DNA of 64,000 nucleotides from sequence record MH595538.1. One strand, written 5' to 3'. Within the stretch, counting starts at the first letter, position 1. Every line of letters starts with the position of its first letter. Under the pieces are notes generated by a model. That model was not told the DNA's origin, ran no database searches, and was given only the letters and a program-made list of their open reading frames with translations. Made by a program: the position numbers and the translations under genes. This document shows positions 12,535-59,391 of the stretch, piece by piece.

Positions 12535-14640
12535 TTATCTTTTCAAGATATAGTCTGTTGTATTGATCTGGCCAGCTTGTCTATGGAACGCACCGACCGC
12601 ACAGTTTTCAGTACCGCCTGGATCCCATGAGCGAGACTTATAAGCAAAGCCACTATGGTCAGTATTTGGAGCTTGTGCGATACGACCCCAGTAAACGTAT
12701 TCATCGCCCTCCTGATTGACCAATAGATTTTCAGCTTCGTTATAATACCGAGGATCTTTAAACATCAGACGTTCAATAATGATATCGCCCAGTGTAAAGT
12801 TGTTTGGACTGCCATAAACATTGTCCTGCAGTACATCGTCTACAGTGTAGTCTGTTTCATTGATAGTGAATAGGACTGAAGTGCCGATAAGATCAGGTGC
12901 CCAAAAGATACTGTTCGCAACCTTAAGCTTATTACCTGTGCCGAATACTTCGAATAAGCGGCGTCGGGTATTTACCTGGTAATTGGTAAATATTGCGTTG
13001 TATATTTCAAGGTCACAGTTATCGGAATCAATGCCAAAGCACCCTGGAGGATTATTGGTATCCAGCCCGCTATGTATATGAATAGTCGGGTTATAGAATC
13101 TTCCTTTTACCGGACCTCTTAACGCAACAGCGCCAGATTTCACGCCGAAGGCGTTACCGCCGCCTATGAATATATCAGCAAAGCTATAGACAAAGCCTAT
13201 ATTTGGAGAGTCACCCATCCACTGTAGCGCGCCAGTACCATAGTTAACCGTCTTATGGTTTGAACTATCATATATGTTTCGCGCAGAAACAATTTTAGGC
13301 CCTACGTCAGTAGCTCGGTTATAGTCATTGACGTACAATGGAGAATGACAACCAGTGATAATAGAATCCGTAATTTCTACTAGTCCACTGCCGTAACCTA
13401 AGTTTACATAGATGCCTGCCGAGTCACTGCCGTATGCACGGTAACGACGGAATGTTACCTTTTTAAACGTATTGTAAATACGCGTCATGTAATCGAGAGG
13501 ACCAACAATCTCCATGTCTATGATTTCAATTTCTTCATCTTCGCGACCGACATAGTCATCTTGATCATTCACACCGATAAACATTGCGATTTCGCCACCA
13601 TCGGCTCGGCAACGTCTAAGCTTAGCGCCGGCATTGACTCGATAGCCTGTGCCAATGACATGGTTAGTTTCACATCGATCTAGAACAGTACCTTTCTTTT
13701 CAATCTGGAAGCCTGACGTATTAGATATGCTTGCAGTACATCGTCTAAGAGTCGCAGGTTCTTTTATATGAAAGGTAATATCTCCTCCAGTCAAATCGAT
13801 ATCTTCTACTAGTTGCCCTGCTTCATCGATCGTAAGCATTGACGTAGGGTTATCTTCATCAGGAGCGCGGGCAATATAAACCTCGGTAAGATTCGGCGTA
13901 TGAGGCCATTTTATAGTCACCTTATCAGACTCTATATAAAGATCCCCAAAACGCAATAGTTCAGCAGGGTCAGATACCATACGCTCTTTTCTGACCATGA
14001 TGCCAAATAGCGTCATCGCAACAACCGGGTCACCAACTTCGATTGCATGAGACCAGGTTTCATTGCCTTCATCTATCCAGTTAGACAATCGCTCATTTTC
14101 ATAAGTCAGTTCGGTTGCCGTGGGTGCAGTTAACAATAGTTTCCACTTGGCTGTGTCGGTTAAAGCCACATTGCTGTTTTCAGGAATGTCTTCTTGTGCC
14201 TGATAGACTTCGCCATTTACCCATACCAGATCACTTTGTTTATATTCGGTGTTAACATCGTGACTGTCAAAGTTACGCGCTGCCTCTGGTTTGCCCTGTA
14301 GTTGTTTCCAGTAAGTCGTATCGGTTAATGGAATATTACTATTCGGGGTAATATCTTGGAGACACTCATAGATGCCTTCTGGGATATAAAGGAAGTCCTT
14401 GGCTTTGTACTCGCCATTAACATCATGGGATGTATCTGTGTTACCGCCTTTAAAGGTAACCAGCAATTCTTTCCAGTGCTCTGTGTTTGTAATAGGGATA
14501 TTCATGCTCGCTGGCACGTCTTTAATACATTCGTACACATCGCCGTCTACCCATACCTCATCGAGTTTTAGGTACTCGGCATTGGTATCGTGACTTGGGT
14601 ACTTATCACCTTTAATACGAGCAATAACTTTATCAGTCAT
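12535..14640 (-). CDS. Putative virion appendage protein: 3 CBM5/12-like repeats plus a C-terminal parallel beta-helix (pectin-lyase-like) domain
   Basis: Three SHDxNxEY...V...G.Y....D.P...N..LT....WK.L repeats; beta-helix-like short-strand periodicity in the C-terminal half. Confidence 0.7.
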   Translation of the reverse strand: MTDKVIARIKGDKYPSHDTNAEYLKLDEVWVDGDVYECIKDVPASMNIPITNTEHWKELLVTFKGGNTDTSHDVNGEYKAKDFLYIPEGIYECLQDITPNSNIPLTDTTYWKQLQGKPEAARNFDSHDVNTEYKQSDLVWVNGEVYQAQEDIPENSNVALTDTAKWKLLLTAPTATELTYENERLSNWIDEGNETWSHAIEVGDPVVAMTLFGIMVRKERMVSDPAELLRFGDLYIESDKVTIKWPHTPNLTEVYIARAPDEDNPTSMLTIDEAGQLVEDIDLTGGDITFHIKEPATLRRCTASISNTSGFQIEKKGTVLDRCETNHVIGTGYRVNAGAKLRRCRADGGEIAMFIGVNDQDDYVGREDEEIEIIDMEIVGPLDYMTRIYNTFKKVTFRRYRAYGSDSAGIYVNLGYGSGLVEITDSIITGCHSPLYVNDYNRATDVGPKIVSARNIYDSSNHKTVNYGTGALQWMGDSPNIGFVYSFADIFIGGGNAFGVKSGAVALRGPVKGRFYNPTIHIHSGLDTNNPPGCFGIDSDNCDLEIYNAIFTNYQVNTRRRLFEVFGTGNKLKVANSIFWAPDLIGTSVLFTINETDYTVDDVLQDNVYGSPNNFTLGDIIIERLMFKDPRYYNEAENLLVNQEGDEYVYWGRIAQAPNTDHSGFAYKSRSWDPGGTENCAVGAFHRQAGQINTTDYILKR
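14140..14595 (-). repeat. Three tandem ~44-aa CBM5/12-like repeats (protein level)
   Basis: SHDTNAEY..., SHDVNGEY..., SHDVNTEY..., each ending in WKEL, WKQL or WKLL. Confidence 0.85.
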
Positions 14641-14708
14641 TAGATAATCCTTTATGTTTTGATTCTAGTACTCAGTCGATTCGTCGTTGTTTCAGCGACA
14701 TTTAATAC

Positions 14709-14725
14709 CTATATCACCAGGATGA
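14709..14725 (+). promoter_or_regulatory. Putative phage promoter motif, copy 3
   Basis: CTATATCACC-AGGA-TGA in a divergent gap. Confidence 0.7.
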
Positions 14726-14752
14726 AATAACTCAATAAAAGGAGTATAGATC

Positions 14753-15055
14753 GTGACTATTATCACAGCAGGCAAAACCTTTAAGATTAAGCGCTATGCA
14801 AACGGAGAGCTCTTAACTCGAACGGGCCCTTATAAGGTTCTGGTCGATTTCGATATGGGGATCGAATATCGTCGTTACTTAAAGGAAGAAGAACTTAACG
14901 ACATTATTGATATGCAAGGATTCGATACAATGATTCCTACAGCAGATCAACAACGTAAGTTCATTAACTGGCTAGAAAAAGAGAAGTTCATTCTACAGCC
15001 AGAATCACTAGGTGACGTCACGTTTGAAATACATGACGGTAAATTAACCGCGTAA
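14753..15055 (+). CDS. Hypothetical protein
   Basis: GTG start, SD AAGGAG. Confidence 0.75.
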   Translation: MTIITAGKTFKIKRYANGELLTRTGPYKVLVDFDMGIEYRRYLKEEELNDIIDMQGFDTMIPTADQQRKFINWLEKEKFILQPESLGDVTFEIHDGKLTA

Positions 15056-15060
15056 TTATC

Positions 15061-15078
15061 GAGAGGCTTCGGCCTCTC
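15061..15078 (+). terminator. Hairpin with UUCG loop
   Basis: GAGAGGC-TTCG-GCCTCTC. Confidence 0.7.
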
Positions 15079-15101
15079 TTATATATTTTGATGGAGTAGT
15101 T

Positions 15102-15695: not shown

Positions 15696-15698
15696 GGT

Positions 15699-16142: not shown

Positions 16143-16151
16143 TGTATCACA

Positions 16152-16173
16152 AAGAGTCCTTGCGAGGGCTCTT
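16152..16173 (+). terminator. Hairpin
   Basis: AAGAGTCCT-TGCG-AGGGCTCTT. Confidence 0.6.
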
Positions 16174-16228
16174 GATGATGCACGTCGCATCACCTGTGGA
16201 AGCAGGTAAATTAACTTAGGAAACTATC

Positions 16229-34831: not shown

Positions 34832-34848
34832 CTATATAACCATGATGA
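34832..34848 (+). promoter_or_regulatory. Putative phage promoter motif, copy 6
   Basis: CTATATAACC-ATGA-TGA. Confidence 0.7.
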
Positions 34849-38998: not shown

Positions 38999-39005
38999 TA
39001 GTATC

Positions 39006-39033
39006 TGTAACTGTGGCTTTTGTCACAGTTACA
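39006..39033 (+). terminator. Hairpin
   Basis: TGTAACTGTGGC-TTTT-GTCACAGTTACA. Confidence 0.6.
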
Positions 39034-39052
39034 ATAACTTACAGGAATAATT

Positions 39053-39985
39053 ATGTCTCAGCAGCAATCTTTCGATAAAAGAAAAAATTATCATCTCTAC
39101 GCACCTTATTTCAAAATTATTAATTTCCGACAGTTTAAAAATGCGGCTGATCACGCTAAAACAAACAGAGGCATATACCATGCCAAGCGAGTGGAAGGTC
39201 TTTTACCTCCTTATGCGGCCTGTATGCTAGACGTACATCCCGTTGTGTCTTTATATCGGGGCATCAAGGTAGGTCCCTATATTTACGCCCAGCTATGGGA
39301 CAAAGATCTAAACTTGTTTTACGCCAGAATAAAATGCGGAGTTAACGATGAGCCTTCTATATCTGAACGCAGTCGCAGGAATAGCCGCGACTGGGAACAG
39401 GTTCATTACGAGCGTCTATTCCACTATATGCGAACGGGCCGAATACTAGGCTATGGCGAAACTCTTACTCATACAGTCGGATTCCACAGCAATCGATACT
39501 ATAACGAGGAAACATGGAAAACCATCTCTAAAGAAGAACGTAATTTCTTCCGTCGCAATGTCTATGCAAATGAAACCGCTTTTCCTGTTAAACTCACCAA
39601 TAGTTATTTTGAGCGCACGGAAGAATTGGTCTGGAGTAAATATCGTCGATATCGAGGTAAAGTTTGGTTAACCCGAGGAATGATGCATCTCATCATTAAT
39701 TGCTTCATGCTTCACATGCGGAGACTGAGGAAAACTTGTCCTCAGAAAAAAGCATTTGGCAGAATGATTGGCACTGCTATATCATGGGCGGCTTCCGGCT
39801 ATAGCATGACTTACACTAATATGGAATTGGATGGTTCAGGTCGACTAAGTCATCTTCCTTACCTTTCAAAAGAAGATAGGATTCACATATATTCATGCGT
39901 TGAAGATATTCCTGAAGGAACGTTCTTTCATGATAAAAAATACGACGAAGTACTCGGTCTATTAGAAAAGCAGTTAAGTAAATAA
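39053..39985 (+). CDS. Hypothetical basic protein
   Basis: 310-aa ORF, SD AGGA. Confidence 0.8.
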   Translation: MSQQQSFDKRKNYHLYAPYFKIINFRQFKNAADHAKTNRGIYHAKRVEGLLPPYAACMLDVHPVVSLYRGIKVGPYIYAQLWDKDLNLFYARIKCGVNDEPSISERSRRNSRDWEQVHYERLFHYMRTGRILGYGETLTHTVGFHSNRYYNEETWKTISKEERNFFRRNVYANETAFPVKLTNSYFERTEELVWSKYRRYRGKVWLTRGMMHLIINCFMLHMRRLRKTCPQKKAFGRMIGTAISWAASGYSMTYTNMELDGSGRLSHLPYLSKEDRIHIYSCVEDIPEGTFFHDKKYDEVLGLLEKQLSK

Positions 39986-39989
39986 CCAT

Positions 39990-40015
39990 TGCCTGTGTCC
40001 ATATGGACACAGGCA
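39990..40015 (+). terminator. Hairpin
   Basis: TGCCTGTGTCC-ATAT-GGACACAGGCA. Confidence 0.7.
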
Positions 40016-40085: not shown

Positions 40086-41921
40086 ATGTATGATAATCTC
40101 ATCACTCGCCTACTGCTTAAATCAGACGGCGGAGAAACATTGTTGCCTTGGTTATTAACTGCCGGTAACACGATCACACAAGAGCGCATCTTGCCTTGGG
40201 ATCAAACAAATGCTTATGCTGAAAATGAACTGGTTATTAACCCGTCTGACAATCACGTTTACCATGCTAATGCCGCTATCGTTGCCAATACCGCATGGAA
40301 CGCTGCAGACTGGACACAGGTCGATACTCACGTAGGTTACGTTCAGCCTTATGATGAAAACCGTCAATATGAACCTGATGATCTTGTTCACTTCAATGAC
40401 AAACTGTTCGTAAGTAACAAAGCAACTACTGGCACGTTTGTTGTTGCGGACTGGGTTGAACTATCTAATGACGGACAGATGCAAGACATCTTCGTTTACG
40501 ATGACGACTCGGAAACAGGTACACGCAATGTTACCGACATCTATTTTGTAACTGCTGTTCCTGCTCCGTATGTACACATCCTTTACGATACAATCGTAGG
40601 TGTCGGTTCATCTTTAATGTCATCTATCGTGAAACTCAACAGTGTTTGGATTGATGCCGATGACAGCCCATTCCCATTCCGTGGTGTTGATATCCTAGGT
40701 CAAGCAAACCCTGGCGTCACACTACAGAATGTAAAAGACCGCATCGCGGATGACATCGCTCTAGCCAACGGCAATACGCTATTCATAGTCATGGCAGGTA
40801 CTAGTGACTGTAACACTTATCTAGCACCAGGCGGCATTGATGATAGCGACACAGGCGATATTCTGTCATGGGAATCAATGACTACCGAACAGAAAACGAC
40901 TGCTGAAGGTTTAATGCGTGACATCGTCACTGCGCTACAGCCTCATGGCGACGTAGCTATCGCATCAATCCCTTATGTGGATCCACGTAGTGCTTTGTCC
41001 ATTATGGCCGATAAAGGCCGTAACTTGCATGCAGGTTCATGGAATGACAATCTAGTTAGTCCGCTATGTGAAGAACTAACACCTAACTGGTATGATGCAG
41101 GTAACGGAGCTCCCGTATTCGACTTCTACTCTGTAGGCTATGCAGACCCATCTATTCTAGATGACGATAACCTGCACTACTATATGGATTACGATTACGA
41201 CGCGACTGAGATCGGCTATGCCGATGGCGACGGTACGTTCTCAATGCGTGAATACATGATCAAGCGACTTGCTGATATGGGTAACATTCCTGCTGCTCCG
41301 TTCGATACTGATAAGTATGAGAACCGTATCATTATCAACCTGGCTGATGATCCTACGTATACGCAGCGTCCAGCGATCCGTCGCAAGGCAAACAACATTG
41401 CTGTAGACAAAGACGCAGGCAACCAAGAAAACCTCACTGTGGGTTTCCTAGAAGGCGGTACGGTACCTGCTGGCTTAGCATTGGCTATCGAGTTCACTAG
41501 CCCTGGCGTTATTCGCCGAGGCATTACTGCCGATTCGATGCACTATGATGAAGGCATTCGTGATCCGAATATCCTAAATACCAGCATTAACATTATCAAC
41601 AGTCGCACAATGACGATCAAGATTGCTAATGCAGGTAAAGGCCGTATTCAGATGGCTGGCCTATATCAGTCTACTGCTGAAAACGGAATGGAGACCGAAG
41701 TCACTTTCACTGATGACAATGGCGCTAAAACCATTACGTACAAGAACACACTAGACAACTCTGGCAGCTACACAGTAGAAGACTACTTTGGTGAAGCAGA
41801 GTATGACGTGCGTGTTGCTGGCGAGCTGGTATTGTCGTTTAACGGCATTGGCACCGATAATGCTTCTGACGACAGCAAATATTCTGGTGTTTCTGGCATC
41901 CTATTGGACATCGAAAAATAA
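40086..41921 (+). CDS. CBM5/12-like repeats plus SGNH/GDSL hydrolase plus C-terminal beta-sandwich; putative virion appendage
   Basis: Two W-terminated repeats; SGNH blocks I (VGVGSSL), II (GQANPG), III (AGTSD), V (DDNLH). Confidence 0.65.
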   Translation: MYDNLITRLLLKSDGGETLLPWLLTAGNTITQERILPWDQTNAYAENELVINPSDNHVYHANAAIVANTAWNAADWTQVDTHVGYVQPYDENRQYEPDDLVHFNDKLFVSNKATTGTFVVADWVELSNDGQMQDIFVYDDDSETGTRNVTDIYFVTAVPAPYVHILYDTIVGVGSSLMSSIVKLNSVWIDADDSPFPFRGVDILGQANPGVTLQNVKDRIADDIALANGNTLFIVMAGTSDCNTYLAPGGIDDSDTGDILSWESMTTEQKTTAEGLMRDIVTALQPHGDVAIASIPYVDPRSALSIMADKGRNLHAGSWNDNLVSPLCEELTPNWYDAGNGAPVFDFYSVGYADPSILDDDNLHYYMDYDYDATEIGYADGDGTFSMREYMIKRLADMGNIPAAPFDTDKYENRIIINLADDPTYTQRPAIRRKANNIAVDKDAGNQENLTVGFLEGGTVPAGLALAIEFTSPGVIRRGITADSMHYDEGIRDPNILNTSINIINSRTMTIKIANAGKGRIQMAGLYQSTAENGMETEVTFTDDNGAKTITYKNTLDNSGSYTVEDYFGEAEYDVRVAGELVLSFNGIGTDNASDDSKYSGVSGILLDIEK

Positions 41922-41925: not shown

Positions 41926-41953
41926 TATACCTGGGGCAATTGCCCCAGGTATA
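41926..41953. terminator. Bidirectional hairpin (GGGCA-NN-TGCCC family)
   Basis: TATACCTGGGGCA-AT-TGCCCCAGGTATA between convergent genes. Confidence 0.75.
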
Positions 41954-41956: not shown

Positions 41957-42691
41957 TTATGTTACTCTGACGATCAAGAAACCTTTCTCATCCACGATCA
42001 TGTCAGTGCCCGGCAAGAACTCCTGGCTGGATGTAAAGACCAGTTCACCATTATCATTAACTGAAAAAGAAGAAGGACTATCTATCGGAACCGATAACTC
42101 TAGCTTACCTTCGGGACTAGATATTACATCAATTGAAAAGATAAGTTCATCAGGATTGATGTACTGAATAACATCAGGAGATGACACATCTGCTCTTAGA
42201 TTGTTATCATTAAGCTCGATAACTACAGCTTCTTCAATCTGTACATATTCTTGATCGCCATCAACTTGCTTATACCAGATCTCAGTAATTAAGTCACCAG
42301 TCTCTAGTTCAATCCAGTCATCCGCATTAAACTCCTGTACAGCCCCTGCGGCGGTTTTAACGTAAATCTTATCCTCTTCTACCACCACATCTTCTTTTGC
42401 GTAACCACGGCTGAATACGGGCTTCGAAACAGTAGCATCAGGAACTGTGATTATTTCAGTATCGCTAGGTTGATGGACAACCGATATTGAACCGTCATCA
42501 TCAAGATAAAGCGTTCCTGTTTTCACTCCTGTTGTAGAGTCTGATATCATCGGTACCAGTTCGCCATGTTCTGTAAACATAGAACTGCGAATAGCAAGAT
42601 AAGAGTCCTTGTCAATTAAGAACAAGTTAGTGGGGATTTTCGTTTCGCTAACCAGGGATATAATCCTGGCAAAAAAGGATGGCTTATCCAT
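41957..42691 (-). CDS. Acidic protein with one CBM-like repeat and C-terminal VDExGxL repeats; putative appendage adaptor
   Basis: Start moved to MDKPS after SD GGAG; repeat GYAKEDVVVEEDKIY...DDWIEL. Confidence 0.6.
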   Translation of the reverse strand: MDKPSFFARIISLVSETKIPTNLFLIDKDSYLAIRSSMFTEHGELVPMISDSTTGVKTGTLYLDDDGSISVVHQPSDTEIITVPDATVSKPVFSRGYAKEDVVVEEDKIYVKTAAGAVQEFNADDWIELETGDLITEIWYKQVDGDQEYVQIEEAVVIELNDNNLRADVSSPDVIQYINPDELIFSIDVISSPEGKLELSVPIDSPSSFSVNDNGELVFTSSQEFLPGTDMIVDEKGFLIVRVT

Positions 42692-42795
42692 AGTTACTCC
42701 TAAGTACATCTTAACATAAGATTTCATCTAACTTAAATATGACAGGGATGATTCATGATGTAGGTAAAACTGCCATTGATCAAAAGAGAACGGAA

Positions 42796-43534: not shown

Positions 43535-44428
43535 ATGACGCAAACATTAGATGATATTCGAGTACTTAAACGCAATGGTAAATTGGAACCAGTAGACCTG
43601 GATAAGATTCACCGCGTATTACATTGGGCTGCTGAAGGCCTAGCCGGTATCTCAATATCCGACGTCGAATTAAAAGCTCACGTACAGTTCTTTGACGGCA
43701 TCGAGACTAAAGACATCCATGATCTGTTAGTCAAAGCGGCAGCTGAGCTCATTACCGCAGAAGAACCAGACTATCAGTACTTCGCTGCACGCCTAAAGCT
43801 ATTCTCATTGCGCAAAGAAGCATACGGTCAGTTTGAACCACCCAAACTGGTTGACCACATTAAAAACATGATTGACATTGGCAAGTATGACATGGAAATA
43901 CTTGGCATGTATACGCCAGAAGATTTTGAATACTATGAAGGCATCATCAATCACTGGAATGACATGAATTATGCTTACGCAGCCATGGAACAATTCTCTG
44001 GTAAATACTTAGTCAAGAACCGTGATACTGGCCGTATATATGAGACCCCTCAATTTATCAATATCATGGCCCCTTTGACCATGTTTGGTAAATATCCAGA
44101 GCCTCAGCGTCGTGAACTTGTAACGGATTTCTATCAAGCTTTGGTTGACGGTAAGTTATCTCTACCAACACCTATTATGTCAGGTGTGCGAACACCTACT
44201 CGCCAATTCAGCAGCTGTACTCTTATCGATTGTGATGATACTCTAGAGTCTATTATTGCGACCACTGGCGCTATTGTCCGCTATGCGGCTAAGCGAGCAG
44301 GCATTGGTATCAACGCAGGTCGTATTCGCGGTATTGGCTCTCCTATCCGTGATGGAGAAGCAGTATCGACAGGGGAAGTTGGTTTCCTTAAATTGTTTAA
44401 CTCGGCAGTGGGATGCTGCTCACAGGGT
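43535..44428 (+). CDS. nrdA: Ribonucleotide reductase class Ia alpha subunit, exon 1 (298 aa)
   Basis: ATP-cone VLKRNG; PTPIMSGVRT, FSSCTL; ends CSQG. Confidence 0.96.
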
Positions 44429-44882
44429 GAATATTGCCCCGCATAGAGGTAACTCTATGTTGTAAACTCCTTTAATTGCTGGGACTCCCTAAAGCTTGCT
44501 TGCCTCTTTGAGGAGCCGAAAGGCAGAAACAAGTAGCAAGATGGGCTAAGACGATAGTAAGTCTAAGGTCTTGATAATGGGACATCAGCCTTCGCATCAA
44601 GTAATGTGATTCAACGACTATCGAAAGCTTAACCTGAGAAGAAATATCTCGGGGGATGATAAGCTTACCTGTGGGTAAGTGAAGCGAGTAGAGTACGGCC
44701 CAAGCGGGTGGGTTCCCAATCCCTTAAATGGAAACAAGGAGGGTCCTTGATTTGGTAACAGAATCAAGGATCGTGATATAGTCTCGTCAGTCAAACTTAT
44801 CCCTTTCGGTTTGACATTCTATGGAAACATAGAGCTGCAGGTAATGCTGCGGACTGGTCTAGCGAACCAGTTGAAGATTACG
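44429..44882 (+). mobile_element. Group I intron (IA2-like, 454 nt, no ORF) in nrdA
   Basis: Removal restores CSQG|GVRKGSA in frame (762 aa in total); exon-terminal U pairs with GCCC (P1); P2 CATAGAG-GTAA-CTCTATG; R CAACGACTAT and S GATATAGTC; ends in G. Confidence 0.92.
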
Positions 44883-46277
44883 GGTGTAAGAAAGGGATCA
44901 GCAACTACCTTTTTCCCGATATGGCACATCGAAGCCCGTCAATTAATGGAACTTAAAAACAACCGTGGTGTTGAAGAAAACCGTGTTCGTACTATGGACT
45001 ATGGTTTCCAGATTAACCGTTTCTTCTACGAGCGCCTACAGCGTGGTAAGACTATTCGTTTATTCTGTCCTTCAGAAGTTCCTGGGCTATACGAAGCATT
45101 CTTCCAAGATCAAGCTGAGTTTGCAAGACTGTATGAAAAGTATGAAAAGATGCCTCACTTGCGTCATCATGATGTTGCCGCTAAAGATCTATTCGGTACA
45201 TTGATGCAGGAGCGCGCTGGTACAGGCCGTATCTATATACAGCACGTCGACCATACAAACATGTACGGTAATTTCATTGAAGAAGAAGCGCCAACGTTCA
45301 TGTCTAACCTGTGTGTAGAAATCACACTGCCTACTAAGCCACTCAAGTTTGATAACGACCCAGAAGGTGAAATTGCTCTATGTACTTTAGCGGCATTTAA
45401 CCTTGGCGTGATTACACTCGAAGAGTTCCCTCGTTTGGCTGAACTGGTTGTGCGTTTCCTAGATGCGCTATTAGACTATCAAGATTATCCTTCTGAAGCA
45501 GCACGTAATTCATCGATGAAGCGCCGTACTTTAGGGGTTGGCATCATCAACTATGCATACTGGATCGCTAAGAATGGATTTAAGTATTCAGACGGCAGTG
45601 CAAACAACATGACTCACCTTTGGATTGAGAACATGCAGTACAGCCTAATGAAAGCATCAGTTCAGTTGGCAAAAGAGAAAGGTGCTTGTCCTGCGTTCAA
45701 TCAAACTAAGATGGCCAAAGGTATTCTCCCGATTGATAATTACAAGCGTGAAGTCGATGAACTGCATACCCAAGAACTAACTTGCGATTGGGAAGGTCTG
45801 CGTGCCGATATCGCTAAGTATGGTATGCGTAACTCTACTATGTCTGCGTTCATGCCTTCTGAAACATCATCTCAGATTGCTAATGCAACAAACGGCATTG
45901 AGCCACCTAACAAGCTTATGACTCGTAAGGCATCTAAAGACGGTATTCTTTCCCAGGTTGTACCTGACGTCGAGAACTTACGTGACTCTTATGAGCTTCG
46001 TTGGAACATGCCAGACAACATTGGTTATATTCACCTAGTTGGCATTATGCAGAAGTTCGTATGTCAGGCAATATCTGCGAATACGAACTACGATCCTGCT
46101 AAGTTCCCAGGCGGAAAAGTGCCAATGAACGTTATGCTTAAAGAACTCATGACGTGTTATAAATATGGTGTTAAAACTCTGTACTATCATAACACGGAAG
46201 ACGGTAGCAACGACCCAGTAGCTAACGCTATTGAGAAAGAAGACGAAAGCTGCGGCGGTGGTGGCTGTAAGATTTAA
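44883..46277 (+). CDS. nrdA: Ribonucleotide reductase class Ia alpha subunit, exon 2
   Basis: SNLCVEI active site, PSETSSQI, KTLYY, C-terminal CGGGGC. Confidence 0.96.
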   Translation, partial: GVRKGSATTFFPIWHIEARQLMELKNNRGVEENRVRTMDYGFQINRFFYERLQRGKTIRLFCPSEVPGLYEAFFQDQAEFARLYEKYEKMPHLRHHDVAAKDLFGTLMQERAGTGRIYIQHVDHTNMYGNFIEEEAPTFMSNLCVEITLPTKPLKFDNDPEGEIALCTLAAFNLGVITLEEFPRLAELVVRFLDALLDYQDYPSEAARNSSMKRRTLGVGIINYAYWIAKNGFKYSDGSANNMTHLWIENMQYSLMKASVQLAKEKGACPAFNQTKMAKGILPIDNYKREVDELHTQELTCDWEGLRADIAKYGMRNSTMSAFMPSETSSQIANATNGIEPPNKLMTRKASKDGILSQVVPDVENLRDSYELRWNMPDNIGYIHLVGIMQKFVCQAISANTNYDPAKFPGGKVPMNVMLKELMTCYKYGVKTLYYHNTEDGSNDPVANAIEKEDESCGGGGCKI

Positions 46278-46288
46278 TCCGGCACCAT

Positions 46289-46319
46289 AAGGGGAGGTGT
46301 GAATACTTCCCCTTTTTTT
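46289..46319 (+). terminator. Hairpin plus T-run between nrdA and nrdB
   Basis: AAGGGGAGGT...ACTTCCCCTT-TTTTT. Confidence 0.6.
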
Positions 46320-46354
46320 AACTTATTAAAAATTGAATTTATCAGGAGACTAAA

Positions 46355-47059
46355 GTGTCTAAACAGGTTATCTTCAAAGCAGGTCCAACAAACTACCTTA
46401 ATCAACCAATGTTCTTCGGCGACTCTGTATCAACCGCTCGCTATGATCAGCAGACATATCCGTTCTTTGAAAAGCTTATCGAAAAGCAGCTTTCATTCTT
46501 TTGGCGACCTGAAGAAGTAGATGTCTCTGCAGACCGTCGCGATTGGCAAGGACTCTCTAAAGCGGAGAAACATATCTTTATCTCTAATCTTCAGTATCAG
46601 ACACTGCTAGATTCTATCCAAGGCCGTAGCCCCAATATCGCATTCTTGCCAATCACCTCAGTACCTGAAGTAGAGACATGGATTGAAACCTGGTCATTCT
46701 CAGAAACGATTCACTCTCGTTCGTACACGCATATTATGCGTAACATCCTCACAGGTGAAGAAATGGACGAGGTGTTTAATGGCATTACTACCATTCCTGA
46801 AATCATTGCTCGCGCCGAGCGTTTTGGCCGTGCTTACGAAGAACTGATTGAATGCAACAATGCTCTGCTGCAGTCTAAAGTAGACGTACCTAACCGAGCT
46901 GAATTGGAGCGTGAACAAAAACGTAAGTTCCTGCGTGCCCTTGTAACAGTAAACGGTTTAGAAGCTTTAGCATTCTACGTATCATTTGCATGCTCATGGG
47001 CATTTGCCGAACGTTCTATCATGGAAGGTAACGCTAAGATCATTAGACTCATCGCCCGT
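46355..47059 (+). CDS. nrdB: Ribonucleotide reductase class Ia beta subunit, exon 1 (235 aa)
   Basis: GTG start with SD AGGAG; [27 protein letters not shown]; ends IIRLIAR. Confidence 0.96.
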
Positions 47060-48197
47060 TAATATGGCGGCTTCATGGAGTGATCCATGAATGCACACCT
47101 CGTGAAATCAGGGGACTCCGGTAACAGGAAATCCTGAGGTTGCTCTATATCAAATCACCTCCATATAAAACGTTTTGGTTTTATAGCGAGAGGTTTTATA
47201 TGAAATGATTTGTTATGGTGAAATATGGATGGATCATAAAGAAAGACCTGATGATTATATTGTCAGTAATTTTGGCAGGGTCTTTTCCAGAAAAAGTTGT
47301 ATGATGTTAAAGCAGTCACTAACCAAGGCAGGATATCTAACTTATGGGAGTAGGTTAGGATCGGTCCATCGTTTGATTGTGACGCATTATTTAGGACCCA
47401 TTCCCAAAGGAATGGTAGTTAATCATAAAAATGGAATTAAGACAGATAACTGGATTGATAACCTAGAGATAACTACTCATTCTGCTAATACCCAACATGC
47501 TTACGATACGGGTTTAGCCAAAGGGAAAAAGGGCGCTGCTAACTCACAGGCTAAAGTAACAGAAGAAATCATTCTTGATATTTATAAGATGTTCGAAGCT
47601 GGCTTTAGTAACCAAGACATTAGTAAAAGATACGGACTGCATGACCGCTACGTATCTCTCATAAGACATGGAAAAAGATGGAAGTATCTGTATGTAAGAT
47701 ACGGTAAGACTTTCCCACGATCGTATGAATTTGTCTTTCGAAAAGAACAGATTCTTATGGCAAGGGAACTATTACTCAAGGGCCATAACAATTTAACTAT
47801 TGCAATGGCAACCGGAATAGAGAAGTCTAACATATCCAGATTCCGACATGGAAAAATGAATGCTTGGTGTGAGTGGATGGCAATATACGACAGAGCAACC
47901 GCAACGACTATCGAAAGCTTAACTTGAGAAGAAATCTCTCGAGGGATGATAAGCTTACCCGCGGGTAAGTGAAGCGAGTAGAGTACAGCCACAAGCTTAT
48001 GGTGGTCCTGAAAGGGATAGCGGAGAAATCCGTAATGGAAGCGCGAGGGGTCTCTTATCTGGTAACAGGGTAAGAGATCATGATATAGTCTGGCCCGGCC
48101 TTAACGGCCTATCTGTGAATACACAGGTATCCTAGGTAATGCTAGGAGCAGTATATGAAACTATACGGGTGTGTTTTGCGAACACACTGAACATACG
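47060..48197 (+). mobile_element. Group I intron (IA2-like, 1138 nt) with HNH homing endonuclease in nrdB
   Basis: Removal restores IAR|DETLH (iron ligands; 374 aa in total); exon CCGU pairs with GCGG (47067-70); P2 TTCATGGA-GTGA-TCCATGAA; R and S elements; ends in G. Confidence 0.93.
47205..47927 (+). CDS. Intron-encoded HNH homing endonuclease (I-HmuI-like architecture with two HTH-like repeats)
   Basis: VSNFGRV; VHRL...VNHKNGIKTDN..DNLE..T...N..H; 3' end overlaps the intron R element. Confidence 0.92.
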   Translation: MICYGEIWMDHKERPDDYIVSNFGRVFSRKSCMMLKQSLTKAGYLTYGSRLGSVHRLIVTHYLGPIPKGMVVNHKNGIKTDNWIDNLEITTHSANTQHAYDTGLAKGKKGAANSQAKVTEEIILDIYKMFEAGFSNQDISKRYGLHDRYVSLIRHGKRWKYLYVRYGKTFPRSYEFVFRKEQILMARELLLKGHNNLTIAMATGIEKSNISRFRHGKMNAWCEWMAIYDRATATTIESLT

Positions 48198-48617
48198 GAT
48201 GAAACTTTACATTTAGCCGGCACACAGTACATGATCAATGAACTGGCTAAAGGCGCTCAAGGAGCTGAATGGAAAGAGCTCTTTGAAGAAATGCGTGATG
48301 AGCTAGGTGAGATCATGCTAGCTATTGCCATGCAGGAAAAAGAGTGGGGTCGCTACCTGTTTAAAGACGGTACGATGATCGGCCTTAACTCAAACATTAT
48401 AGACCAGCTTATCGAGTACTTCTGTAATATCCGTTGTGCGGCTATTAAACTAGATAAGCCTTTTGCAGAACAGAAAAAGAATCCAATTGGATGGTTTAAC
48501 TCTTGGATTCAATCCGCCGGTGTTCAAGTAGCACCGCAAGAAACAGAGCAGTCTTCTTACCTTGTCGGTCAAGTAGATTCTACTATTGATGAAGACGCTC
48601 TAGACATGGATCTTTAA
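48198..48617 (+). CDS. nrdB: Ribonucleotide reductase beta subunit, exon 2
   Basis: DETLH, QEKEWGRYLF, QVAPQETEQSSY. Confidence 0.95.
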   Translation, partial: DETLHLAGTQYMINELAKGAQGAEWKELFEEMRDELGEIMLAIAMQEKEWGRYLFKDGTMIGLNSNIIDQLIEYFCNIRCAAIKLDKPFAEQKKNPIGWFNSWIQSAGVQVAPQETEQSSYLVGQVDSTIDEDALDMDL

Positions 48618-49437: not shown

Positions 49438-49460
49438 TGCACCGGCTTTTTGCCGGTGCA
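49438..49460 (+). terminator. Hairpin
   Basis: TGCACCGGC-TTTTT-GCCGGTGCA. Confidence 0.65.
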
Positions 49461-49507: not shown

Positions 49508-51232
49508 ATGTCACTTATTCGCTTAGTTAAGCTAGTAGACGGCGTTGCAACAGGACTGGGCACTGTCATTAGAACACAAGACAGTCCATATCCTGTACAA
49601 GCTAGTTATAACGAATTTAGACCCACAGAGAACTATCTTAAAGATCATGTCACTTTCTATAACGGAGAGTTATATCAGGCCAAGGCAGACATTGCCGCTG
49701 GTCAATGGAATATCGATCACTGGACAGCGGTCAACGAGTACGTAGGTTATATACAGGAATATCAAGCAGGAGAAACTTACAATCTTGATGAGTTTGTTAT
49801 CCATAATGATCGTCTTTACAAAACCAAAGAGGATGGAATTACAGGCACATGGGATGTAAGTCGATGGGAAGAACTAACGGCTAATACGACTGTCGAAACC
49901 ATCAATGCCTACTTAATCGACAACCACCAATTAAATAAACCTTTATCTAGTGCGGTACTAAAAGGGAATGTAAGAAAGCTGTACTTAGCAGACGGTTCTA
50001 TTCCTGGAGAAACTAGTGGAGTAACGGCTAAAATAAAAACACTTATTGGCTATTACCCTACATGGCGTACAGAGTTCTTTGGCTCAGGTAATACCGACCT
50101 AACGATTCGTAAGCCGTCTAATAGTCCTAGTGCTTTTAGCCACGTTAAACTATCCTTTGCTCACACTAAGCCTGTGTTTGATCCTACTAGTCCCGATTTG
50201 ACCGGGATTGGTTTTAATACTCAATCTGGATTAGAAGCTGCCTTTAAAGAAGACATCGGTAAACTAAGAGCTCGTGGTACAAAAGTCTATCTGTCTGTAG
50301 GAGGAGCCACTTACGGAAGACCTGACGTTGCTGATGCGTGGACTGGACTTATTGATGAATCCGACATTATTGATGCTGGCAGCAATGACTATCCTGCACA
50401 GACTCCTTACACTAAAGCTTTAGTTGATGTGATCGAGTACTTAGACTTGGATGGGATTGATCTGGACTTTGAAGATGATATGGCCTGGCATACTAACGTT
50501 CGAACAACATGGCTAGACAATCAATATAAGCTACTGCGTCTATTTAGGTTCATCGCTGATACAGCAGGCACTGCTTTAGGAAGACCTATTGCGACAGCTA
50601 CTGCATGTTGGTCAACCGGATGGGATAGCAGCGCAGGGAGCGTTGCAGACATTGCTACTCCAGACTACGATGGAAACAAGGTTTCTTACTTTGGAGGATC
50701 GGCTGGTCGAGACAGAAGTCTGTACGGAGGTTACACATCCGTAGACTTAGGTGGCGTGATGAACGCATCCAGCTTTGTTGATGTCTTTGTCAATATGACC
50801 TATGATGCAATATTTTCAGATTTTGCAGGTAATGAAGATCCTGCTGGGCCTTTCGATTCTAACTACGATCCCGTTAAAGCTTATGAGCAGTGCCGCAGCA
50901 TCATTACCGATCCAAATAAAATCTGTACCATAGGGGTTACTAACAATCCAGGGTTTGGAGATCATGAACTTATGGTCTACAGTAACCAGTGTGCTCCCTC
51001 AGGGCCTCATCCTACGGTTTTAGACAAGGATCAATACGGTAACGTCATTGACGCTCCTTTCTCTGTTCAGAGAGTCACTGAGGCGATTGAAGCAAATCTC
51101 ACCCAGTATCCTAATGACGGAATTATTCAATGGTCGATTTATGCGATTGATCCGACAACGTCATATGTCCATGAGGGGAATGCCGAAGCATCCTGGAAAG
51201 ACATCGTGGATTATGTAGCAACTAAAATGTAA
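49508..51232 (+). CDS. CBM5/12-like repeats plus GH18 chitinase-like catalytic domain
   Basis: YLSVGGATY (SxGG), LDGIDLDFE (DxxDxDxE), VNMTYD, IIQWS; two N-terminal repeats closely similar to those of 40086. Confidence 0.85.
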   Translation: MSLIRLVKLVDGVATGLGTVIRTQDSPYPVQASYNEFRPTENYLKDHVTFYNGELYQAKADIAAGQWNIDHWTAVNEYVGYIQEYQAGETYNLDEFVIHNDRLYKTKEDGITGTWDVSRWEELTANTTVETINAYLIDNHQLNKPLSSAVLKGNVRKLYLADGSIPGETSGVTAKIKTLIGYYPTWRTEFFGSGNTDLTIRKPSNSPSAFSHVKLSFAHTKPVFDPTSPDLTGIGFNTQSGLEAAFKEDIGKLRARGTKVYLSVGGATYGRPDVADAWTGLIDESDIIDAGSNDYPAQTPYTKALVDVIEYLDLDGIDLDFEDDMAWHTNVRTTWLDNQYKLLRLFRFIADTAGTALGRPIATATACWSTGWDSSAGSVADIATPDYDGNKVSYFGGSAGRDRSLYGGYTSVDLGGVMNASSFVDVFVNMTYDAIFSDFAGNEDPAGPFDSNYDPVKAYEQCRSIITDPNKICTIGVTNNPGFGDHELMVYSNQCAPSGPHPTVLDKDQYGNVIDAPFSVQRVTEAIEANLTQYPNDGIIQWSIYAIDPTTSYVHEGNAEASWKDIVDYVATKM

Positions 51233-51260
51233 TATAAGGGCCGGATGTCCGGCCCTTATA
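51233..51260 (+). terminator. Hairpin
   Basis: TATAAGGGCCGGA-TG-TCCGGCCCTTATA. Confidence 0.7.
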
Positions 51261-51283
51261 TGTATCTCAATTTCTTTTTATAC

Positions 51284-51300
51284 CTATATAACCATGGTGT
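51284..51300 (+). promoter_or_regulatory. Putative phage promoter motif, copy 7
   Basis: CTATATAACC-ATGG-TGT. Confidence 0.65.
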
Positions 51301-54429: not shown

Positions 54430-54440
54430 ACTGAACTTAT

Positions 54441-54463: not shown

Positions 54464-54492
54464 AATCAATATTTTATTTAAAGGATGATAGT

Positions 54493-55655: not shown

Positions 55656-55682
55656 CTTCCGCATAATTTAAGGAGACGGAAA

Positions 55683-56600: not shown

Positions 56601-56604
56601 AATA

Positions 56605-56630
56605 TAAAGGAGGGCAAATGCCCTCCTTTA
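56605..56630. terminator. Bidirectional hairpin (GGGCA-NN-TGCCC family)
   Basis: TAAAGGAGGGCA-AA-TGCCCTCCTTTA between convergent genes. Confidence 0.75.
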
Positions 56631-56651
56631 CTTATTTACTTTTTTATTTTG

Positions 56652-58886
56652 TTAAGTAAGTACAGTAACGCCTAGAGCCGCTGTATCGATGTCTGCGTTA
56701 TCGGAACGTGAAAGCGCAGTATGTCCCTTAGCATAGTTACTATGGCACATATGACTCAATATACGAGCTCCTGAAGGCACATAAATAGGTCGCCCTGACG
56801 TAGTACCGGTATGATCCCATATGTCATTGCCTTTAACCTTCAAGGTACCATTCTCACCTGGTTGTCCTTCTGCAATGGACGGGTTACCACAGGTTACTGA
56901 AATGTGGTTAGAGCCATCATCGCCATTTGGATAAGCCAGTTCGTTATCCGCAACAACTACATGCATTGCAAAGCCCATATCATCACGGCCTACAACGATG
57001 CCTGCCTGGTTTAAGTTAGGTAAGATGTTGTTTCTTACTTCCACTCGCTCAATAGGCCAGCTGTCAGTAGGCAAAGTCAAACTAACGCCCTTAGTGCACT
57101 TGTTGGCGTAGTTATTCTTGATATGTAGCTCAGGAGAGCCGATAGTAGAGTCTGGATCTACTTCATGCGTCCAATCGATGAAGGTACCTTCATAATCTAA
57201 GACCTTATTATCTTCGATGAAGACCGCACTATCACCATGGATGTTACAGTTGTTACGCATCCAGTGATCGCCGCCTTTGAAAGTATTGTTCTTGATTACA
57301 CAGGTCCTAACGATGCTTGCGCGTTGCTTAACAGAGTTCTCACCAGTATATGTATGCGAGAAGAAGCGAATTGCTTCAGCAGGGTAACTGGCAGGCTGTC
57401 CTTCAGCAGCTGAGTTATGTGCTTCATAGTAATTGTCATACATGAACAGATCACCAGGAATCGGATTAGAGTCCATGTCATTGAGATCCATGCCTCGGTT
57501 CTGCAAGAACAAGAATCGTTCACGACCGCCTAAGATAATGTTACCATAGATCTTGATCACTCCATATTTAGTAATCGTAGGATAGGTATCGGTAGTACCA
57601 TCCGTGTTTGACGATAACATGAACGAGATGCCTACATCTCTGATAACATTACCAGCGATAATCATTTCTTTACCGCCTTGCACCTGGAATGCTTCGCCTT
57701 CTTCATAACCAAGGACGATGTTATTGGCAATGATTGCACCCCACGCATCCTCACCCATTCGAGAAGCTGTTTTAATAGCTGCGCCGTTAGAATCGATAAA
57801 GACATTATCTGTCCAGATTTGACGGTTAGTACCACCAGGCGTCATCGTATTCTGATAACAGTACCGGAAGTAACAGGCGGTCACGCGCACGTCAAATGAA
57901 GAAACCGCATCAGGAACTGTAGCGCTATCATAACCGCCTGAGTGAGCACGCAGTCCGGCATCCCCGAATGACTCTAGGAAACAGCCATCAGCCACAGGAC
58001 TCGTACAGGCACGGAAGTAAAGGCCCTGCTCACCCCAGTTATTATTCTTACTGGTTCCGTTAAGTCCTTTAAGACCAGTGTTCGATAACATCGGAGACAC
58101 ACAGCTATCAAAGCGCACTAGATATTCGCCGCTCCACAATAGGGTGTCTTTAAACAAACGACCATAGGCCATGCGGAAGTTAGACTTGTTTTCAATTAAG
58201 AAGGTAGACTTGCATGCATAGTCGCCATCGATGAATACGGTTGAGCCATCAGGCATAAACTTATTGATGCGAATACAAGCATCCTCTACTGACTGAGGAT
58301 CACCCATTTTAGCGCCAAAGTCAGATAGCTTCACTACGAGGCCATATTCTACATCCATATCCAGAGGCTTAGACGGCAAGAAGTCATTGGCTGTTAATTC
58401 AGCTATTGTTGGACGTTCGGTTTCACCTGCCCATGAGAAACTGACTACTAATGTCTCTGATTCGTCAATGACAGTAACCGGAGCCATAACGCCAGATGCG
58501 TTAATTGTGATTCCGTTATGGATTGCAGGATCTATTGTAACATCTGTCTGCAAGAAGGTTTTGATCTCAAGTAGCGCACTGCTATCATAAAAGAGTGCCC
58601 GGAAACGAGGAATGGTCAGTACGCCTGTCGATGAGTTATATGACAGATTACCGCCTAGTCTGGAAATACCTTTACTGGAAATCGCCGGTACTGCTTTTGT
58701 ATCCGATACGGTTTTCACCCAGTACTCAGGGTCCGTGGGAGCTGTACCTAAAGGTACATCTTTTAATGCACGATATACGCCGTCGCCGGACACTCGTACT
58801 TCGTCAAGGAAACTGTAGACCTCGCTAATGTCATATTCTTCCCTGAACTTACCAAAAACCCTGGCCAGCTTTTTTGTTTGTGCCAT
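56652..58886 (-). CDS. Tailspike / depolymerase-like protein: CBM-like N-terminal repeat plus right-handed parallel beta-helix
   Basis: LARVFG...Y..LDEVRV.G.GVY.A.KDVP.GTAPTDPEYW; repeated IxGNxI and IxNNxL strands; FGAKMGD...TVFIDGDY start typical of pectin-lyase folds. Confidence 0.8.
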   Translation of the reverse strand: MAQTKKLARVFGKFREEYDISEVYSFLDEVRVSGDGVYRALKDVPLGTAPTDPEYWVKTVSDTKAVPAISSKGISRLGGNLSYNSSTGVLTIPRFRALFYDSSALLEIKTFLQTDVTIDPAIHNGITINASGVMAPVTVIDESETLVVSFSWAGETERPTIAELTANDFLPSKPLDMDVEYGLVVKLSDFGAKMGDPQSVEDACIRINKFMPDGSTVFIDGDYACKSTFLIENKSNFRMAYGRLFKDTLLWSGEYLVRFDSCVSPMLSNTGLKGLNGTSKNNNWGEQGLYFRACTSPVADGCFLESFGDAGLRAHSGGYDSATVPDAVSSFDVRVTACYFRYCYQNTMTPGGTNRQIWTDNVFIDSNGAAIKTASRMGEDAWGAIIANNIVLGYEEGEAFQVQGGKEMIIAGNVIRDVGISFMLSSNTDGTTDTYPTITKYGVIKIYGNIILGGRERFLFLQNRGMDLNDMDSNPIPGDLFMYDNYYEAHNSAAEGQPASYPAEAIRFFSHTYTGENSVKQRASIVRTCVIKNNTFKGGDHWMRNNCNIHGDSAVFIEDNKVLDYEGTFIDWTHEVDPDSTIGSPELHIKNNYANKCTKGVSLTLPTDSWPIERVEVRNNILPNLNQAGIVVGRDDMGFAMHVVVADNELAYPNGDDGSNHISVTCGNPSIAEGQPGENGTLKVKGNDIWDHTGTTSGRPIYVPSGARILSHMCHSNYAKGHTALSRSDNADIDTAALGVTVLT

Positions 58887-58896
58887 GTTAGTGTCC

Positions 58897-59391
58897 TTAT
58901 AAAACTAAAGTCAAGTAGCCGTCTTCATCGACTATATATTTATCAATGTCTTCACCAGACGTGGTTAATTCTAAATAGCCATCATCAGATACTTCGAGAA
59001 TCCATAAACCTGTTTGAGGATCATAGAAATTCTCCCAGTAAGTGGGATCGGTTAATGCGGCATTAGATGCACCAGGGACATCGCTCTTAGCGCGATAGAA
59101 TCCTGATGCAAGGAATATTTCATCGCCCTTCTGATAGTCTTGTGTTGGATCATGAGACTTATAATAGGTTGCATCAGACACTGGACCGCCAGGACTGTTG
59201 CCGCCTGTCCATAACTGCTTCCAGTATTCTGTATCCGAAAGACTGACGTTACTATTTTCAGGTACGTCTTTGATGCAGCTATAAATCCCGTTACCGTCGA
59301 TAAAGACCATGTCTATTTCTGTGTATGCCGCATTGACATCATGCGTGGTCAGTACATCACCTCTGACACGAGCCAAAATTTTATCTATCAT
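58897..59391 (-). CDS. Small protein of two CBM-like repeats plus VDEDGYL tail; putative appendage adaptor
   Basis: MIDKILARVRGD matches MTDKVIARIKGD of 12535; THDVNAAY and SHDPTQDY repeats. Confidence 0.75.
   Translation of the reverse strand: MIDKILARVRGDVLTTHDVNAAYTEIDMVFIDGNGIYSCIKDVPENSNVSLSDTEYWKQLWTGGNSPGGPVSDATYYKSHDPTQDYQKGDEIFLASGFYRAKSDVPGASNAALTDPTYWENFYDPQTGLWILEVSDDGYLELTTSGEDIDKYIVDEDGYLTLVL

Follow-up and report, generated by a model that had tools for sequence, protein, structure and literature searches.

In the ordinary-sized flagellotropic myoviruses Milano, an Agrobacterium phage, and 7-7-1, a single protein in each phage, the tailspike gp124 (8FQC) and the long tail fibre gp015 (9RKV), respectively, begins with an N-terminal arm and two tandem repeats of about 45 residues. 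Residues 26 to 120 of Milano gp124 form a globular domain that is wedged between the baseplate wedge proteins and acts as a tail-binding module, the 25-residue arm ahead of this domain touches both the sheath and the baseplate, and residues 1 to 120 of 7-7-1 gp015 constitute the fibre anchor (PMC10811340, PMC12796354). Cysteines in the Milano arm cross-link it to the tail, the bodies of both fibres are non-enzymatic according to their authors, and the Milano authors pointed out that the N-terminal domains of gp124 resemble TSP1 and TSP3 of phage CBA120. Other phages carry several receptor-binding proteins that combine conserved N-terminal attachment with swappable depolymerase or esterase heads; such multi-tailspike systems include TSP1 to TSP4 of CBA120 (Ackermannviridae), those of phi92 and PhiK64-1/RaK2, and the gp63.1 esterase and gp66 of G7C. 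PhiK64-1 and RaK2 are Klebsiella jumbo phages. In the phages with such systems, the multi-tailspike genes form one cluster and the branched architecture has been established experimentally. Here we describe a probable relative of these arrangements in Vibrio phage BONAISHI (MH595538.1; 288,967 bp). The DNA analysed (the window) is a stretch of 64,000 nucleotides, identical in sequence to bases 186001-250000 of the phage, in which six dispersed genes encode proteins with N-terminal repeats; those of one of them, 40086, are of the same sequence type as the repeats of the Milano and 7-7-1 fibres.

BONAISHI is a phiKZ-like jumbo myovirus whose host is Vibrio coralliilyticus, and it has been proposed for use against a coral pathogen. 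The six window genes, each referred to below by its lower window coordinate, are 12535 (open reading frame [ORF] 192c), 40086 (ORF229), 41957 (ORF230c), 49508 (ORF238), 56652 (ORF249c), and 58897 (ORF250c). All six are labelled hypothetical protein in the record, and the paper describing the phage lists three of them with weak BLAST hits, without discussion (PMC6207643). A search of NCBIfam profiles gave zero matches for any member. An earlier inspection of the DNA letters alone (the sequence-only reading) had singled out these six ORFs, and all are present, with intact reading frames, where it had placed them.

By analogy with the solved fibres, our analysis makes it fairly likely that a set of 14 paralogous genes, the six included, encodes receptor-binding tail fibres or tailspikes, in which an attachment and shaft module of the CBM5/12 fold is joined to exchangeable polysaccharide-degrading heads. 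The sequence-only reading had proposed interchangeable fibre or spike proteins with a shared N-terminal dock and varied heads, and this idea is supported by homology to the two fibres solved in virions, by the fold matches of the 58897 model, by the occurrence of the heads in tail proteins of Ackermannviridae, and by a block of homologous genes in the jumbo phage Yong XC31. With Milano gp124 and 7-7-1 gp015 the family shares the arm, the tandem repeats, and a plan that runs from anchor through a beta-helix or enzyme body to a C-terminal beta-sandwich, but BONAISHI has 14 carriers, three arm types, and enzyme-like heads where those phages have one such protein each. Compared with the multi-tailspike systems, the BONAISHI genes are dispersed and partly inverted, they reside in a phiKZ-like jumbo phage, and the system is known here from its genes alone. 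On this explanation, what we describe is a known strategy of multiple receptor-binding proteins, in a phiKZ-like vibriophage that had not been annotated for it and whose gene layout is unusual in being dispersed and insulated.

A paralogous family of 14 genes

A hidden Markov model (HMM) of the repeat, iterated to convergence, was scanned over 2407 six-frame ORF segments covering the whole phage, piece by piece. It describes a single repeat of about 45 residues that is found in each of the six proteins at an E value of 1.6e-9 or lower, with three copies in 12535, two each in 40086, 49508, and 58897, and one each in 41957 and 56652, which bears out the earlier count of one to three copies per protein; off-frame or unrelated matches numbered zero. 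The same scan identified eight genes outside the window, ORF141 (with 16 copies), ORF142, ORF160, ORF162, ORF164, ORF165, ORF168c, and ORF169, so that the family comprises 14 genes and 37 repeat copies genome-wide. Because of this result we rejected the six as a complete family, and the description of a six-member family was an understatement. The 14 carriers, all in one genome, have arms of three types and heads of no fewer than four classes.

ORF141 (L005:45070-48201, plus strand) lies downstream of the GH19 endolysin region and encodes a protein of 1043 residues with 16 tandem repeats; its homologues occur in the Yong phages only, and it is likely the long fibre of this lineage. ORF160, ORF162, ORF164, and ORF165 (L006:19856-25835, plus strand) each carry a single repeat behind the third arm type, and ORF160 also matches Pfam DUF4457 (30.5 bits). 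Family genes are partially clustered in the region ORF141 to ORF169, which includes ORF168c, a paralogue of 40086 (45% identical).

The two N-terminal subtypes distinguished in the sequence-only reading are real. BLASTP groups 12535, 56652, and 58897 together (type A) and 40086 with 49508 (type B), leaving 41957 unlinked. An HMM of the type-A repeat alone, in which two tyrosines and a tryptophan are invariant, reached 49508 marginally and missed 41957, and an HMM of the type-B repeat found 41957 (E = 1.8e-6) and 12535 (E = 3.6e-4). The two repeat types are joined by hhalign (81% probability, E = 1.2e-5). Of the three arm types seen at the extreme N termini in this genome, A and B occur in the window, and the arm of 41957 is type-B-like. 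In all six proteins the repeats sit in the first 170 residues, after a conserved type-A or type-B arm. We considered 41957 as an unrelated gene and rejected this on the basis of the type-B HMM, the iterated HMM, its N-terminal arm, and the position of its homologue in the Yong XC31 block.

The repeat as a probable attachment module

The sequence-only reading had assigned the repeats to the CBM5/12 type (carbohydrate-binding module [CBM] families 5 and 12). On the Pfam profile CBM_5_12 (PF02839; curated cut-off, 26.2 bits), ORF141 scores 94.5 bits, well above the cut-off; the six window proteins score 19.8, 12.8, or 21.0 bits or give no match, and none reaches 26.2 bits. ORF141 also matches the PHROG family “tail fiber protein proximal subunit” (E = 4e-18), and in protein P0012 the repeat (54.1 bits on CBM_5_12) is combined with Phage_fiber_2 and tail-fibre PHROGs.

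The closest relatives of known structure are the fibre anchors introduced above. Residues 38 to 133 of 40086 align with residues 29 to 123 of 7-7-1 gp015 (9rkv_M; E = 5.5e-7) and with residues 30 to 126 of Milano gp124 (8fqc_P1; E = 3.3e-4). An AlphaFold model of 58897, of moderate confidence (predicted local distance difference test [pLDDT] score of 62 overall and 70 to 88 over the repeats), led to the same proteins: its top Foldseek matches in the PDB were 9rkv_M (E = 1.8e-5) and 8fqc_Q1 (E = 3.2e-4), with global TM-scores that are low because the domain orientations differ. The next fold matches were the tandem CBM12 domains of Vibrio chitin-oligosaccharide deacetylases (9jeo/4ny2) and classical chitin-binding domains, at about 2 to 3 Å per repeat (2d49, with a root mean square deviation of 2.6 Å over 48 residues; also 1wvu and 4tx8). 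A viral fold library contained many phage proteins with the repeat module, labelled tail fibres, tail proteins, pectate lyases, chitinases, or CBM5/12 proteins. On this evidence the earlier call of sequence type was right, and both the Pfam score of ORF141 and the predicted structure of 58897 support a CBM5/12 sequence type and fold for the repeat.

The repeat shares its sequence pattern and small hairpin-plus-strand fold with the CBM5/12 domains of Streptomyces ChiC, Serratia ChiB, and Vibrio chitin-oligosaccharide deacetylase, but differs from them in lying N-terminally behind a docking arm, in occurring in up to 16 tandem copies, and in having structural fibre modules as its nearest relatives. 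Since the closest solved relatives are tail-binding modules, an anchor or shaft is likelier than a chitin binder, and by this analogy attachment together with formation of a proximal shaft appears the best supported role, rather than glycan capture. The sequence-only reading had favoured chitin-binding modules. In its fullest form, this alternative holds that the repeats are working CBM5/12 modules that tether the virion or its enzymes to chitin or another polymer rich in N-acetylglucosamine (GlcNAc) that Vibrio hosts inhabit, that the GH18 head of 49508 digests chitin, and that ORF141 is an adhesive fibre. The high score of ORF141 and the weaker matches of several other members are in line with it, as are the superposition of single repeats of the 58897 model on the chitin-binding domains of chitinases and the CBM12 domains of the Vibrio deacetylases, the chitin-binding labels in the viral fold library, and the intact GH18 catalytic motif of 49508. 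We nevertheless consider it improbable. The nearest solved relatives bury the segment as a wedged baseplate anchor, and glycan contact by it is not reported; in the BONAISHI proteins the module is at the opposite end from the enzyme, behind the conserved arm; 40086 has a separate CBM-like domain at its C terminus; and an exhaustive search with 12535 gave no cellular chitinase-type proteins. For the distal repeats of ORF141, anchoring and glycan binding are compatible roles and not mutually exclusive.

A word-based search of a 5.8-billion-protein set with 12535 and 58897 retrieved only the queries themselves, and scans of IMG/VR found zero relatives for 58897 and 41957.

Diverse heads

The best identified head is that of 56652 (56652-58886, minus strand; 744 residues), which follows a type-A arm and one repeat (residues 16 to 58; 58713-58841). 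Residues 189 to 486 (57429-58322), ahead of a further C-terminal region, match chain residues 12 to 302 of 9ozd_A at E = 4.3e-12 and would form a polysaccharide-lyase beta-helix. This structure is that of V. cholerae RbmB, a lyase that cleaves the biofilm polysaccharide VPS (PMC12993940). RbmB residues are numbered here as in that paper; the chain numbering differs by 28, an offset that we worked out from W138, R167, and R231. The equivalents of RbmB W138 and R167 are identical in 56652, and K372-x3-R376 has the same spacing as the catalytic pair K227/R231, in which K227 is the base, although it lies two positions upstream in the HMMER alignment. The VPS-specific residues R307 and E253 are not conserved in the alignment, being replaced by F and Q, respectively, and R349 falls outside the aligned stretch; judged from these residues, the substrate of 56652 need not be VPS of the V. 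cholerae type. RbmB is a secreted monomer of about 408 residues with a signal peptide, whereas 56652 has 744 residues and an N-terminal fibre module. The kinship of RbmB with tail proteins of vibriophages and prophages, including a tail-fibre gene of phage Kuja, has been published, and vps/rbm clusters occur in V. coralliilyticus (bioRxiv 10.1101/2024.08.19.608685). The same Kuja gene is also matched by 56652, and a VPS-dependent tailspike has been described in phage Peru-2. With the best-identified head related to a Vibrio VPS lyase, the emphasis of the sequence-only reading on chitin appears weaker than a reading centred on the biofilm matrix.

Phage YC encodes a full-length homologue of 56652, gp103, which includes the type-A arm (31% identity, E = 3e-88) and scores 45.7 bits on Pfam Beta_helix. 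YC and Kuja belong to the Ackermannviridae, a family known for multi-tailspike complexes. Both heads, that of 56652 and that of 40086, have direct homologues among the tail proteins of YC, GR28A, RYC, and Kuja, all Ackermannviridae that infect the same or related hosts. In Kuja, the 40086-type head is the C-terminal part of a “tail collar fiber protein”, where it stands behind a PF12571 N terminus in a tail gene cluster, and in YC an esterase-like head is found in gp108, about 2 kb from gp103.

The 40086 gene (40086-41921, plus strand; 611 residues) encodes a type-B arm, two repeats (residues 36 to 127; 40191-40466), a probable SGNH/GDSL esterase core (about residues 165 to 400; 40578-41285), and a C-terminal beta-sandwich (about residues 500 to 611; 41583-41918). 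The DxxDxDxE signature of GH18 enzymes and the block signatures of SGNH enzymes are textbook features, and they served here as criteria for membership of these classes. In 40086, G172, G174, and S176 (the block I nucleophile) and D361, N362, L363, and H364 (the block V D-x-x-H) are invariant in six relatives. The profile evidence comes from those relatives, three of the six matching Lipase_GDSL_2 (best E = 0.012) and one matching Lipase_GDSL (E = 0.097); 40086 itself has zero Pfam matches, and a profile of its family searched against PDB sequences returned no esterase and only spurious antibody matches. In the AlphaFold model of 40086, strands and helices alternate, but the C-terminal sandwich dominated the results of the fold search. 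Since the mean pLDDT score is 50, only this sandwich was used; its roughly 110 residues match CBM6/32/35 folds at a probability of 1.0, from what is a low-confidence model. Judged by the motifs and the weak profile matches, 40086 probably has an SGNH esterase head; according to the model it is followed by a CBM-like sandwich, and this sandwich is a better candidate than the repeats for the glycan-binding module of the protein.

The product of 49508 (49508-51232, plus strand; 574 residues) has a type-B arm and two repeats (residues 34 to 124; 49607-49879) ahead of a GH18-like head. The signature DxxDxDxE is intact in this head (D-G-I-D-L-D-F-E, residues 315 to 322; 50450-50473), at the point where the Pfam match ends. 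The score on Glyco_hydro_18 is 23.2 bits, below the cut-off of 29.6 bits, that of the Yong XC31 orthologue is 28.7 bits over profile positions 2 to 184, and 49508 matches a PDB chitinase A at E = 1e-3. The head can therefore be called GH18-like by its sequence, with an intact catalytic motif. For the SGNH and GH18 heads proposed in the sequence-only reading, then, the catalytic motifs and weak profile matches speak in favour, and the scores lie below the curated thresholds.

The remaining head, of 12535 (12535-14640, minus strand; 701 residues), follows a type-A arm and three repeats (residues 14 to 170; about 14131-14601) and comprises 530 residues (12535-14124) of no assignable class. It had been taken for a beta-helix. 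The beta-helix stands for 56652, but in 12535 the only indication is a sub-threshold match to Pfam Pect-lyase_RHGA_epim (19.8 bits), and we rejected a pair of related beta-helices because hhalign detected no relationship between the two heads (probability, 0.1%). Only three relatives of the 12535 head were found among 1.84 billion representatives, one of which, P0010, carries it behind a tail-fibre PHROG N terminus; the orthologue of 12535 in Yong XC31 is QAX96198.

Two members have no enzymatic head. The 58897 gene (58897-59391, minus strand) encodes 164 residues, with a type-A arm, two repeats (residues 15 to 122; 59026-59349), and a C-terminal tail (58900-58989) containing two D-x-x-G-x-L-x-L motifs. 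In 41957 (41957-42727, minus strand; 256 residues from the first ATG, or 244 from the deposited start at 42691), a type-B-like arm precedes one repeat (residues 106 to 142; 42302-42412) and a C-terminal stretch (41969-42118) with three such hairpin motifs. The motif has a frequency of 0.16 per 1000 residues in the phage, where 41957 and 58897 are the only proteins to contain it more than once, confirming that the head-less pair share a distinctive ending. Each of them has an orthologue in Yong XC31 that is full-length and equal in size (27 to 39% identity).

The order of 58897 followed by 56652 is mirrored in YC by gp104 followed by gp103, and gp104 likewise ends in the D-x-x-G-x-L-x-L tail motif. 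Homologues of 41957 (QAX96195; E = 2e-15), 58897, and 12535 also occur in the related jumbo phage Yong XC31, where they and a repeat-less beta-helix protein make up an operon-like block of four genes on the strand opposite to the neighbouring genes. The GH18 orthologue of 49508 is a lone inverted gene there, and family occupancy differs between BONAISHI and Yong XC31. The repeat-less protein, QAX96197 (L010:5721-6986, plus strand), is a 421-residue Beta_helix/NosD-type protein encoded between the 58897-like and 12535-like genes. It has no homologue in BONAISHI, and it may be a head that docks via a separate adaptor.

Genomic layout

Four of the six family genes lie on the minus strand, compared with five of the 81 genes in the window (P = 4.4e-5), and in the nearly unidirectional genome arm of 171 genes, five of the eight minus-strand genes are family members (P = 8.5e-5). 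Every family transcription unit has a strong hairpin at its 3' end, and further hairpins precede 40086 and 49508; the stems measure 9 to 14 bp. A 14-bp stem (12492-12523) separates 12535 from the convergent ORF191, an 11-bp stem (39990-40015) follows ORF228 upstream of 40086, a bidirectional 12-bp stem (41926-41953) lies between the convergent genes 40086 and 41957, 9-bp and 13-bp stems flank 49508 upstream (49438-49460) and at its 3' end (51232-51261), and a 12-bp stem (56604-56631) lies between ORF248 and the convergent 56652. The 58897 gene lies 10 nucleotides upstream of 56652 on the same strand, and the two are probably co-transcribed. These features agree with the sequence-only reading, which had placed four family genes on the opposite strand and most behind terminators of their own.

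The neighbours of the family genes are replication, nucleotide, and nicotinamide adenine dinucleotide (NAD) genes, several of which stand behind an 11-nucleotide box, CTATATMACCA, that occurs on the plus strand only, in keeping with the earlier description of the family as scattered among early-type operons. The window contains four copies, at 14709-14719, 34832-34842, 51284-51294, and 59480-59490, all on the plus strand, where 0.04 would be expected, and the main form has nine exact copies in the whole phage, again all on the plus strand. Copies lie about 30 to 40 nucleotides upstream of the first gene of plus-strand operons, and three of the four in the window are within 90 nucleotides of a family-gene boundary. 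The box probably serves as promoter for one of the transcription classes of this chimallivirus. The strand bias, the hairpins, and the box positions together imply that the family genes sit at operon junctions, where inversion or hairpins shield them from read-through; they are separate transcription units, either inverted relative to the surrounding operons or closed by hairpins. A second sequence, a TTAAAACAT-like box, occurs with at most one mismatch 10 to 45 nucleotides upstream of the genes for capsid, sheath, ORF104, ORF121, and ORF141 and also upstream of 12535 (14654-14662, minus strand) and 58897 (59402-59410, minus strand); the copies elsewhere in the phage lie upstream of ORF37c, ORF104, ORF113, ORF121, and ORF141. 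Its identification as a late promoter element is suggestive only, because it is also found upstream of unrelated genes.

Several other features of the window were noted. The ribonucleotide reductase genes (43535-48617, plus strand) are split in the record, the alpha subunit into ORF232 and ORF233 and the beta subunit into ORF234 and ORF236, with an HNH endonuclease gene, ORF235, in between; these splits look like homing-endonuclease or intron-type interruptions. A NAD salvage cluster (23-5502, plus strand) comprises, according to the record, nicotinamide-nucleotide adenylyltransferase, nicotinamide phosphoribosyltransferase, and a nicotinamide riboside transporter. ORF227 and ORF228 (38066-39985, plus strand) both encode 310 residues and were considered as tandem duplicates, but they are unrelated by BLASTP, and their equal length is coincidental.

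Virion fibres or other roles

In the window, the six genes are spread among genes of non-structural function and do not cluster with tail or baseplate genes. That position amid replication, nucleotide, and NAD-metabolism genes, outside the structural clusters, could indicate that the proteins are instead soluble enzymes released at lysis, which would be made during infection and would clear biofilm matrix, capsule, or chitin from around the lysed cell to let progeny spread; the repeats would then be no more than generic domains for oligomerisation or substrate targeting. The solved structure closest to the 56652 head is that of a free dispersal enzyme, RbmB, and P0015, a protein of 286 residues found in the representative search, carries type-A repeats (residues 13 to 137) fused to the domain of a non-structural enzyme, a NUDIX hydrolase. 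Against this, the N termini share homology with modules that bind the tail in solved virions, other phages have the heads fused to N termini recognised as those of tail fibres, the head-less 41957 and 58897 would be purposeless as enzymes, the family genes are insulated from the flanking operons, and phiKZ-like genomes scatter their structural genes anyway, so that we regard release as soluble enzymes as unlikely, somewhat more so than chitin binding by the repeats. It is scarcely credible that the family is evolutionary debris, receptor-binding genes gained from other vibriophages, duplicated, and now mostly disused, with the head-less genes as truncated remnants, for although the heads are common to unrelated Ackermannviridae, occupancy varies between BONAISHI and Yong XC31, and two members lack heads, all six frames are intact, the catalytic signatures are kept, 41957 and 58897 end in a specific shared motif rather than at random, and their same-size orthologues in Yong XC31 point to long-term selection.

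Several observations weigh against assigning the family to tail fibres and tailspikes. The family genes lie in the non-structural genome arm, far from the annotated tail and baseplate genes. PMC6207643 reports no virion proteomics for BONAISHI, and we found no relative backed by proteomics. Among the six, only 12535 and 58897 have the TTAAAACAT-like box with one mismatch, and the unrelated ORF219 and ORF256c have it too, so the box does not fix the expression class of the family genes. YC gp103 shares the type-A arm even though its phage family has a different baseplate, which makes strictly baseplate-specific docking uncertain. Confidence in the two structure models is low to moderate (pLDDT scores of 50 for 40086 and 62 for 58897). 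Finally, the NUDIX fusion in P0015 counts slightly against the assignment, since it means that the repeat is not exclusive to fibres.

Conclusions

With these points taken into account, receptor-binding fibres and tailspikes remain our preferred explanation of the family. We propose that the arm and repeats would form a trimeric module that builds the proximal shaft and fixes each protein either on the baseplate or on another fibre, because the homologous segment of Milano gp124 and 7-7-1 gp015 does so in solved virions. The variable C-terminal heads would then recognise and cut polysaccharides of the host surface or matrix. The head-less 41957 and 58897, each an anchor with a short beta-hairpin tail, are most likely short fibres or adaptors that stand beside the enzyme-bearing members, and the insulated layout may allow the family genes to be expressed on a schedule of their own. 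From these comparisons we infer where the proteins sit in the virion, that they form trimers, what they dock to, which substrates they act on, and when they are expressed.

A bolder proposal, to which we give little credence, combines two ideas. The first is that the repeats do double duty, the arm-proximal copy docking the protein to the tail and the exposed ones, most of all those of the 16-repeat ORF141, binding chitin or a GlcNAc-rich matrix. The second is that inverted or terminator-insulated islands, which place late-acting receptor-binding genes at the boundaries of early operons, are a general regulatory arrangement in chimalliviruses. If the double-duty idea were true, a giant vibriophage could stay on the chitin particles and biofilms that its hosts inhabit, with its lyase, esterase, and GH18 heads working their way through them.

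That phages of one host exchange depolymerase heads swapped onto a shared anchor is already established, and the link from RbmB to phage tails is already published. In phiKZ-like jumbo phages, the proteins that bind receptors have been poorly defined. The present analysis offers a concrete annotation for genes still labelled hypothetical: it assigns 14 genes of one such phage to a probable fibre and spike family, uses two solved virion structures to identify the module by which its members probably attach, and names its likely substrates as VPS-like matrix polysaccharide, acetylated glycans, and GlcNAc polymers. More widely, it indicates that a tail-attachment module widespread among phages is built from the CBM5/12 fold, a relationship that is not stated in the structural papers.

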